Sequence record: PP712906.1
DNA length: 64,000 bases
Reading direction: 5' to 3' (one strand)
A program made the position numbers and the translations under genes. The number at the start of each line of letters is the position of its first letter. Position 1 is the first letter of the stretch. Below are positions 38,023 to 38,349 of the stretch, in pieces. Under the pieces are notes generated by a model. The model had not been told where the DNA came from. It ran no database searches and saw nothing but the letters and a program-made list of their open reading frames with translations.

Positions 38023-38211
38023 CTAATCACAACACAACCCAATATCGTGCGCTTTAATTACGGGATTGATGACCCGTTCGCATGTGATTAGCGTAAAAGT
38101 ATGATTACGCACCTTTTCTTCTTCAATGTCCAAGGCAAAGAGGACTATGAATACTAGTGCGAGAAGATATACAATCAAATTGCTCACCTCGCTTAATAAG
38201 TGAGAGTACAT
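38023..38211 (-). CDS. possible small membrane protein
   Basis: One TM segment; no clear RBS and the ATG lies in the stem flanking the tRNA-like RNA. Confidence 0.35.
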   Translation of the reverse strand: MYSHLLSEVSNLIVYLLALVFIVLFALDIEEEKVRNHTFTLITCERVINPVIKAHDIGLCCD

Positions 38212-38334
38212 TGGTCGAGTGTAACGGAATCGAACCGTTCCCACGATCTCCCTATGATATGCGTAAATTGGTTGCTGAATATAATCATGTCTGATTACAG
38301 TATGCTACGTGTGCTGCCACTACACCAACACTCG
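38212..38334 (-). ncRNA. tRNA chassis carrying a CAGCAA-motif hairpin in place of the anticodon arm (copy H)
   Basis: CGAGUGU/ACACUCG, D arm GUGU-AGUGGCA-GCAC, T arm AACGG-UUCGAUU-CCGUU, ACCA; interior AUGAUUAUAUU-CAGCAA...AUAUCAU; 21-bp flanking inverted repeat 38202-38348. Confidence 0.75.
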
Positions 38335-38349
38335 ACCAATGTACTCTCG

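Follow-up and report, generated by a model that had tools for sequence, protein, structure and literature searches.

The minus strand at positions 38202–38348 of sequence record PP712906.1, analyzed here as a 64,000-nucleotide stretch (the window), carries an element that we call trnX. We find that trnX is a conserved, structured RNA gene with the acceptor, D arm and T arm of a tRNA, arranged in native tRNA order with a 21-bp closing stem, and that it is under selection as an RNA. We consider it fairly probable that trnX is a Y-RNA-class partner of a phage Ro60-like protein, carried on an ordinary, unpermuted tRNA scaffold. We favor this reading because the module in its interior (a helix, the CNGCAA box and the blocks GCAUAUCAU and AGAUCGUG) adjoins DUF2828/DUF7788 genes elsewhere, mostly in the order found in YrlA RNAs. 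Given matches at 100% to Vibrio phage TCU-VP03-AIR1 and at 98.8% to KVP40, the window represents a Schizotequatrovirus, that is, a T4-like, KVP40-like Vibrio phage.

The element is bounded by an inverted repeat with 21-nt arms (38202–38222 and 38328–38348) that are 100% complementary and lie 105 nt apart, confirming the perfect 21-bp repeat around the acceptor described in an earlier note on this DNA; the chance expectation for such a repeat in 64 kb is about 2e-6. All parts of trnX are read from the minus strand. The outer part of the terminal helix is an extension of the acceptor, where the 5' strand GAGAGUACAUUGGU (38335–38348) forms 14 bp with 38202–38215, and the inner part is the acceptor itself, where CGAGUGU (38328–38334) pairs with 38216–38222. 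On the 3' side (38202–38222) the acceptor strand ACACUCG (38222–38216) is followed by ACCA (38215–38212), which opens the extension strand ACCAAUGUACUCUC (38215–38202). The dinucleotide UG joins the 5' strand of the acceptor to the D arm, GUGU-AGUGGCA-GCAC (38311–38325), in which A14, G18 and G19 are in place, and the T arm, AACGG-UUCGAUU-CCGUU, occupies 38223–38239. Between the two arms lies a 71-nt interior (38310–38240) containing UUCAGCAACCAAUUUAC. The earlier picture of a tRNA chassis without an anticodon arm, in which acceptor, D arm, T arm and encoded ACCA surround this interior, was thus borne out.

As a tRNA, trnX has the 7-bp acceptor, the discriminator, the CCA and the signature nucleotides of the T and D loops, and its C1-G72 end with A73-CCA-AU resembles the ends of this phage's tRNA-Pro. 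It does not form a full cloverleaf: in place of a 5-bp anticodon stem with a 7-nt loop, no more than 2 bp of that stem are left. ARAGORN in its default mode made no call on trnX. Rfam at E ≤ 10 gave no match to the tRNA family (RF00005) and none to a ribozyme or other family, returning a T-loop fragment only. The minimum free energy fold has −59.4 kcal/mol, with z = −6.3 against shuffled sequences. In GenBank the orthologs are labelled “tRNA-OTHER”, with a pseudo flag in phi-pp2 and phi-ST2 and none in 1.081.O.

The interior begins with a hairpin, UAAUCA-GACA-UGAUUA (38282–38297), which corresponds to the closing 5'/3' stem of permuted relatives described below. It is followed by the invariant CNGCAA box motif UAUUCAGCAACCAAUUUAC (38263–38281), the presumed site for the Ro60-like protein, and by the likewise invariant blocks GCAUAUCAU ... 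AGAUCGUG (38242–38262), which include a possible 3-bp AUC/GAU hairpin and the 2-bp anticodon-stem remnant. The same blocks are present in three loci from other phages (L006, L009 and L205). The earlier note had placed CAGCAA in the loop of a hairpin formed between AUGAUUAUAU and AUAUCAU (AUGAU.../...AUCAU). That hairpin is not kept in the orthologs, and we rejected it because its partner segment belongs to another, covarying hairpin; the box instead sits just 3' of this covarying 6–7-bp hairpin, in an invariant and apparently unpaired stretch.

For the comparative analysis, six orthologs (this window, phi-pp2, K566, D482, F86 and 1.081.O; down to 74% identity) were aligned together with four “123-nt type” paralogs from relatives and one copy from the uncultivated phage L006. 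Paired cells amounted to 97.9%, and 23 of the 42 pairs had changed on both sides; none of 500 shuffles reached these pairing and covariation values, and slid controls paired at 25–48%. The 21-bp terminal helix contributed 13 pairs changed on both sides, with compensatory changes of the 14-bp extension in K566, F86 and 1.081.O; the acceptor in K566, for example, has become CGUGCGU/ACGCACG. Six of the seven pairs in the interior hairpin covary, as in the variants CUUACU-GACA-AGUAAG (K566) and CAAGUU-GACA-AGCUUG (F86), and so do four of the five pairs in the T stem, where the equivalent of G53-C61 is invariant. The D stem, the 2-bp anticodon-stem remnant and the possible AUC/GAU hairpin show no variation in the close relatives, and these three pairings change compensatorily only in a model-fitted alignment that includes distant members. 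This alignment, which by its construction leans towards the structure, gave 7 of 7 covarying pairs in the interior hairpin and changes on both sides in 35 of 40 pairs over the wider set. With the covariance model R1, trnX itself scores 151.6 bits.

It is clear from the alignment that the interior is the most conserved part of trnX, with UAUUCAGCAA, GCAUAUCAU and AGAUCGUG invariant while the helices drift. The element is found at the same locus in all of the 50 KVP40-like phage records. The covarying terminal stem, hairpin and T stem, together with the invariant interior motifs, argue against an intron or a pseudogene, two explanations that are taken up again below.

The distribution of the module in other phages was analyzed by a pattern scan of IMG/VR, followed by a protein-guided scan for DUF2828/DUF7788 loci. 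The pattern scan returned the module in two unrelated uncultivated phages, L006 and L009. In L006 a native-order copy stands behind a promoter; its end is approximately 60 nt from the start codon of the DUF2828/DUF7788 gene that follows, and upstream an RNA ligase and a HAD_SAK_2 domain of RNA repair are encoded. In L009 a permuted module begins directly behind the stop codon of a gene of this family. The protein-guided scan yielded at least 588 IMG/VR loci with relatives of the DUF2828 protein, 80 of which (L132–L211) were kept; a crude motif scan flagged 32 of these, and inspection by eye left true elements in approximately 20. Permuted copies lie upstream of the gene in L167, L189, L199 and L205 and downstream of it in L161, L163 and L169. 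Direct adjacency between module and DUF2828 gene was found in L006, L009, L167, L189, L195, L199 and L205, so the tie between the two that the earlier note had drawn holds in many unrelated phages. We also observed phages with a Ro60-like gene that carry tandem native-order module-bearing tRNA-likes (L170, 4395–4649) or one native-order and one permuted copy side by side (L195, 1704–2050).

Among the kept loci the consensus of the permuted RNAs runs from 5'-AAGAUCNNU-(U/C)C(A/C/U)GCAA through the T arm, a hairpin with the closed acceptor and the D arm to NNGAUCUUGAUA. The box has the form (U/C)C(A/C/U/G)GCAA, and in the permuted RNAs it follows the 5' stem strand beside the DUF2828 genes. The order in L009 is module, T arm, loop-closed acceptor, D arm, CGUAGC... 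and the 3' stem strand. When left unrotated, this RNA aligned with the trnX profile as two pieces in swapped order; after rotation it gave a single match over profile positions 3–112 of 124 columns with 56.9 bits. Similarly, L205 gave one partial piece unrotated (positions 57–113) and one match spanning positions 14–112 when rotated. The idea that trnX is the native-order counterpart of permuted RNAs is therefore upheld by L009 and L205, both of which realign to its profile once rotated. In a 123-type paralog of KVP40 the hairpin reads GAUUC-UGAUAA-GAAUC, precisely what results from linking the permuted RNA's 3' end to its 5' end. It follows that the interior hairpin of trnX corresponds to the closing stem of a Y RNA, with CNGCAA as the box beside it.

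Two other pattern searches added nothing to this family. In viral contigs the loose pattern CAGCAAN{7,13}GCATATCAT gave only chance matches after filtering, and in bacterial and archaeal genomes GCATATCATN{4,5}AGATCGTG gave 79 matches, close to the chance level estimated at approximately 140, none of them tRNA-like in context. When Rfam 15 was applied at the gathering threshold to 18 related loci it returned tRNAs only, and the DUF2828-associated CNGCAA family was not captured.

The presumed partner of trnX is encoded on the minus strand at 24299–25735 by a Ro60-like gene with DUF2828 and DUF7788/von Willebrand factor A (vWA) domains, assigned by Pfam and by PHROG (“RNA-binding protein”). The Pfam matches of this protein are DUF2828 and DUF7788 and not TROVE. 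A sequence-only search of the PDB returned designed ARM-repeat proteins and a marginal match to the Ro60 of Thermus phage phiLo (E = 0.014). An AlphaFold2 model based on a 53-sequence alignment reached a mean predicted local distance difference test score (pLDDT) of 87 and a predicted template modelling (TM) score of 0.88, compared with a pLDDT of 37 for a single-sequence run. The eight top PDB matches of this model in Foldseek are all Ro60/TROVE proteins aligned at full length (Thermus phage phiLo, Xenopus and human); the entries 9KOP, 1YVR, 2I91, 9L5Y, 9NEP and 9NEN have E-values of 2.5e-8 to 4e-6 and TM scores of 0.5–0.62. The predicted structure has the HEAT-repeat ring and the vWA domain with the MIDAS (for metal ion-dependent adhesion site) motif that characterize Ro60/TROVE, and the MIDAS motif DxSxS is invariant. 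The DUF2828 protein of the window is thus predicted to fold like Ro60, in line with the earlier naming of it as a TROVE protein. With tblastn, homologues were found in 710 GenBank phage records, among them mycobacteriophage proteins labelled “Ro-like RNA binding protein” (32% identity, E approximately 1e-66; E = 2e-66 for the homologue beside the YrlA match described below).

Next to the Ro60-like gene, also on the minus strand, lie an RNaseH_like gene (PF04308; 23724–24254) and a gene for a cREC_REC cyclic-phosphate-processing receiver domain (PF20274; 26823–27182), which fits an RNA-repair or RNA-processing neighborhood. The region 25736–25830 (minus strand) in front of the gene contains a promoter-like TTTACA-N16-TATAAT, and its 5' leader carries UUUACAGCAAUUUAAU, with the box of the partner RNAs. 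This suggests possible autoregulation by the protein.

In 22 phages, YrlA RNAs have been reported to adjoin Ro60 genes (Chen et al. 2014, PMC4201824). In Mycobacterium smegmatis YrlA is opened by RNase P and CCA is added to it (Chen et al. 2014, PMC4201824; Wang et al. 2018, bioRxiv 10.1101/312249), and tRNA-mimicking Y RNAs of the YrlA type are not known in any form but circularly permuted folds that lack a free CCA end. Like YrlA, trnX combines a tRNA-like domain (T arm, D arm and acceptor helix, with covariation in the T stem and the acceptor) with a presumed protein-binding module at the position of the anticodon stem and, through this module in other phages, a link to Ro60-type genes. It differs from YrlA in having normal tRNA order instead of a permuted order with the ends in the Ro60-binding stem, an open acceptor with an encoded ACCA, a GACA loop that closes the module, an acceptor helix extended by 14 bp, a CNGCAA box and a distance of 12.5 kb to the protein gene. 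Yrn1 of Deinococcus radiodurans is likewise unpermuted, with a long 5'/3' stem and a T-arm-like stem-loop (PMC4201824). Its terminal stem, however, holds the Ro60 site and its “anticodon arm” is modelled, whereas trnX has the module at the anticodon-arm position and its terminal stem is the extended acceptor.

Among phages, the phiLo Ro60 binds two phage Y-like RNAs as well as the host PNPase (PMC12135203). The phiLo system with Yrl1 and Yrl2 (PMC12135203; PDB 9KOP, 9L5Y) resembles the present one in combining a phage Ro60-type ring with several phage partner RNAs, and the window's protein finds its closest structural match in the phiLo protein, although the identity is only approximately 15%. 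Yrl1 and Yrl2 differ from trnX in being stem-bulge-stem RNAs with CGAA that lie beside the gene and are not described as tRNA-like. In the Mycobacterium phage JoeDirt (L212, 2950–3230), three consecutive stem RNAs follow the Ro-like gene, and CAGCAAU comes after the 5' stem strand of each. Only the middle one has a tRNA-like domain, and it matches the Rfam YrlA model over its full length with 39.8 bits (E = 4.6e-6), below the gathering threshold of RF02553, which is 69 bits; the second RNA of L009 scores 23.4 bits against YrlA. Since the JoeDirt match to YrlA carries CAGCAAU, CNGCAA may be the phage version of the Ro60 box, and from sequence CAGCAA appears to be a phage-wide box for the Ro60-like (DUF2828) protein family. 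In the literature we found no description of a native-order Y RNA or of a DUF2828-associated CNGCAA family.

A number of observations weigh against trnX as a Y-RNA-class partner. It lies 12.5 kb from the Ro60-like gene, on the same strand and not adjacent to it, whereas the published criterion is within 4 kb. The RF02553 model gives no match to trnX at E ≤ 10, the YrlA matches of its relatives stay below the gathering score, and the box in trnX is CNGCAA and not the published Ro60 motif GNCGAAN0-1G. Inverted repeats would also covary under selection at the DNA level. Some module-bearing members of the family are dispensable, three paralogs being deleted in this lineage. Furthermore, the 21-bp helix encloses the encoded ACCA, which neither the 1.081.O ortholog nor the 123-type paralogs possess. 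Being paired and not conserved, the tRNA-like end of trnX may therefore never be free. Of the earlier claim of a CCA-ended RNA, the encoded ACCA stands, but a free end is hypothetical, as the ACCA is paired in a covarying helix.

Of the other explanations, we regard it as very improbable that trnX is a tRNA with an intron or insert, in which the interior is removed, e.g. by an endonuclease and phage RNA ligases, to leave a working tRNA. The phage does encode RNA-repair-type enzymes, and in relatives there are paralogs, for example the “tRNA-Asn” of 121 nt, whose insert lies next to a preserved 5-bp anticodon stem with an AUGUUAA loop. When the intron mode of ARAGORN was run, as the earlier note had proposed, it forced a “tRNA-SeC(tca)” with a 31-nt intron at the non-canonical position 33/34 and no U33 in the loop; K566, F86, 1.081.O and the 123-type do not preserve the anticodon stem (CGUAG/UUACG) that this solution requires. 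A group I intron would need far more sequence than the insert offers, no ribozyme family appears at E ≤ 10, and the interior is more conserved than the “exons” and recurs in permuted RNAs that have no tRNA to restore. On the forced, non-canonical tRNA-SeC and the lack of stem conservation among the orthologs the intron model was rejected. Even less credit can be given to a tRNA pseudogene or a DNA-level element (terminal repeats of a mobile element, or a homing-endonuclease target) with no function as RNA. Such an element would agree with the “tRNA-OTHER” labels, two of them pseudo-flagged, and with a homing-endonuclease gene 310 bp away, but not with a locus retained in 50 of 50 relatives, with invariant interior motifs, or with compensatory changes that affect the internal hairpin and the T stem as well as the terminal repeat. 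A mobile element with terminal inverted repeats was rejected as a candidate, there being no target-site duplication, a fixed locus and arm changes that are compensatory and not identical.

Two further explanations accept a function for the RNA, and we consider each of them unlikely. One makes trnX a decoy for tRNA-targeting defence nucleases or tRNA-binding factors, independent of the Ro60-like protein. The intact tRNA elbow and acceptor would suit a decoy, as would the location in the tRNA array among counter-defence genes such as Acb1 and the anticodon loop kept by some paralogs. trnX has, however, no anticodon loop, the usual target of anticodon nucleases, and its invariant part is the interior module, which tracks DUF2828 genes and which a protein-independent decoy would not need. 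The other, to which we assign about the same low probability, is a cis-acting processing or regulatory structure derived from a decayed tRNA, with the stalk as an RNase III site that parts the upstream RNAs from a small open reading frame (ORF) and the tRNAs. The 21-bp perfect helix does lie one base from the 19-bp helix of a neighboring RNA (RNA1), a conserved ORF of 51 codons starts 24 nt downstream, and T4 has stable RNAs without an assigned role in its syntenic tRNA cluster. For a processing stalk, on the other hand, neither an invariant 70-nt interior nor covariation in the T arm and conservation of the D loop would be needed, and the link to DUF2828 genes elsewhere is left unexplained.

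If trnX is a Y-RNA-class partner of the Ro60-like protein, it would be transcribed early from tandem promoters as part of a multi-RNA transcript and released at the 21-bp stalk, an RNase III-type substrate, perhaps with subsequent trimming by RNase P and 3' exonucleases to the CCA end. The interior helix and the CNGCAA module would then bind the Ro60-like ring, while the tRNA-like elbow and acceptor end would recruit a tRNA-recognizing factor of host or phage, candidates being 3' exonucleases such as PNPase, the CCA-adding enzyme and enzymes of RNA repair. In the course of infection trnX would in this way act as a tether or gate for the Ro60-like protein, a role that Y RNAs have in Deinococcus, Salmonella and phiLo, from which these steps are inferred. 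The tether and nuclease-bait roles suggested in the earlier note are analogies of the same kind.

The window contains other RNAs that resemble trnX or its partners, all on the minus strand. RNA1 (38350–38501) lies one base from trnX on its 5' side and has a 19-bp closing stem followed by CCGCAAU. In RNA1 22 of 41 pairs covary, the closing stem has compensatory changes and there are three internal hairpins; it is probably a further RNA partner of the Ro60-like protein, one that lacks a tRNA-like domain (YrlB-like). A native-order paralog at 35545–35684, missed by ARAGORN, scores 49.8 bits with the Rfam tRNA model and 66.6 bits with R1. It has a near-canonical tRNA body with an ACCA end and a 54-nt insert that contains the hairpin GAUACU-GACA-AGUAUC and CCAGCAC. 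Copy E (31986–32114) is permuted, with a closing stem, UUCAGCAAACAAUUUAC, a T arm, a closed acceptor-like hairpin and a D-like arm. Its likeness to the interior of trnX, pointed out earlier, is seen in the 17-mer UUCAGCAAMCAAUUUAC, which occurs exactly twice in the window (in trnX and at 32082–32098). As the permuted counterpart of trnX, copy E does have the expected order, but its alignment is weak (8.9 bits). Additional (U)ACAGCAA sites occur in gaps of the tRNA array at 32566, 31370 and 29126, downstream of tRNA-Trp, tRNA-Arg and tRNA-Ser, and these may be additional short Y-like stem RNAs.

The tRNA array consists of 28 tRNA genes on the minus strand, all 28 of which encode CCA, in the same layout as the T4 tRNA cluster. 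Ahead of it, at 39000–40369, lie the genes for dNMP kinase, 57A and 57B/Acb1. Tandem sigma-70-like promoters (38616–38736, minus strand) stand upstream of the RNA genes, TTGACT-16-TAGAAT at 38736–38709 and TTGACT-16-TAAGAT at 38643–38616, and both are kept in K566. Between the second promoter and RNA1 (approximately 38500–38610) there are two 55-nt direct repeats with a 7-bp hairpin in each, and the motif UUAAGCGAG(G/C)UGAG occurs three times on the minus strand (38183–38196, 38590–38603 and 38783–38796). The small ORF downstream of trnX (38023–38178, minus strand; 51 aa) has a TTG start, a hydrophobic N-terminus (LIVYLLALVFIVLFALD...) and a ribosome-binding site, GAGGUGAG, located approximately 8–18 nt past the 3' end of trnX; it is an annotated coding sequence in K566, D482 and F86. 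A homing-endonuclease cassette follows at 37226–37950 (minus strand), with a GIY-YIG ORF at 37224–37892. The cassette occupies the place of 490 bp in phi-pp2 (L001, 1011–1500), which there hold three long tRNA-likes with the trnX interior module, annotated as “tRNA-Asn” (121 nt), “tRNA-Phe” (113 nt) and “tRNA-OTHER” (123 nt). As these three were removed by the cassette, they are dispensable in this lineage.

In T4, segB similarly lies inside the tRNA cluster. The T4 RNAs rnaC and rnaD (species 1 and 2) are small stable RNAs without an assigned role, encoded downstream of genes 1, 57A and 57B in the syntenic tRNA cluster; that cluster also holds a GIY-YIG endonuclease gene, and rnaC has a T arm. 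On inspection by eye, to which this comparison is confined, no CNGCAA module was seen in rnaC and rnaD, and there is no T4 record among the 40 of 710 matching records listed for the DUF2828 search.

Native-order and permuted forms occur together in the same phages, along with copies in which the module adjoins a retained anticodon stem-loop, as in the “tRNA-Asn” of 121 nt in relatives of KVP40. Circularly permuted tRNA genes are known in red algae and archaea and show that the two topologies of the tRNA fold can interconvert in evolution. Those genes are processed to working tRNAs, whereas here both topologies carry a presumed protein-binding module in place of the anticodon loop. A tentative scenario, which we put forward as possible though doubtful, is that YrlA-type RNAs arose when a Ro-binding module was inserted in the anticodon arm of a tRNA and the gene was subsequently permuted, with the copies that retain an anticodon stem-loop as intermediates and the native form being matured like a tRNA by RNase P and CCA.

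The findings point to a large unannotated phage branch of the Ro60/Y-RNA system, spanning the 710 GenBank records and at least 588 IMG/VR loci, in which some members keep the ordinary tRNA topology with an acceptor end and an encoded CCA. This branch accounts for part of the “pseudo-tRNA” or “tRNA-OTHER” annotations in large phages. It also provides natural matched pairs with an open or a closed acceptor on the same module, which could show which tRNA-handling factors are recruited. The finding bears on the partner of the tRNA-like half of YrlA and on the origin of YrlA from tRNA, questions raised by Chen (2014) and Wang (2018). If the native form is matured like a tRNA, as in the tentative scenario above, the Ro60-like ring could be brought to enzymes that need a free acceptor end and that are out of reach for the closed YrlA.

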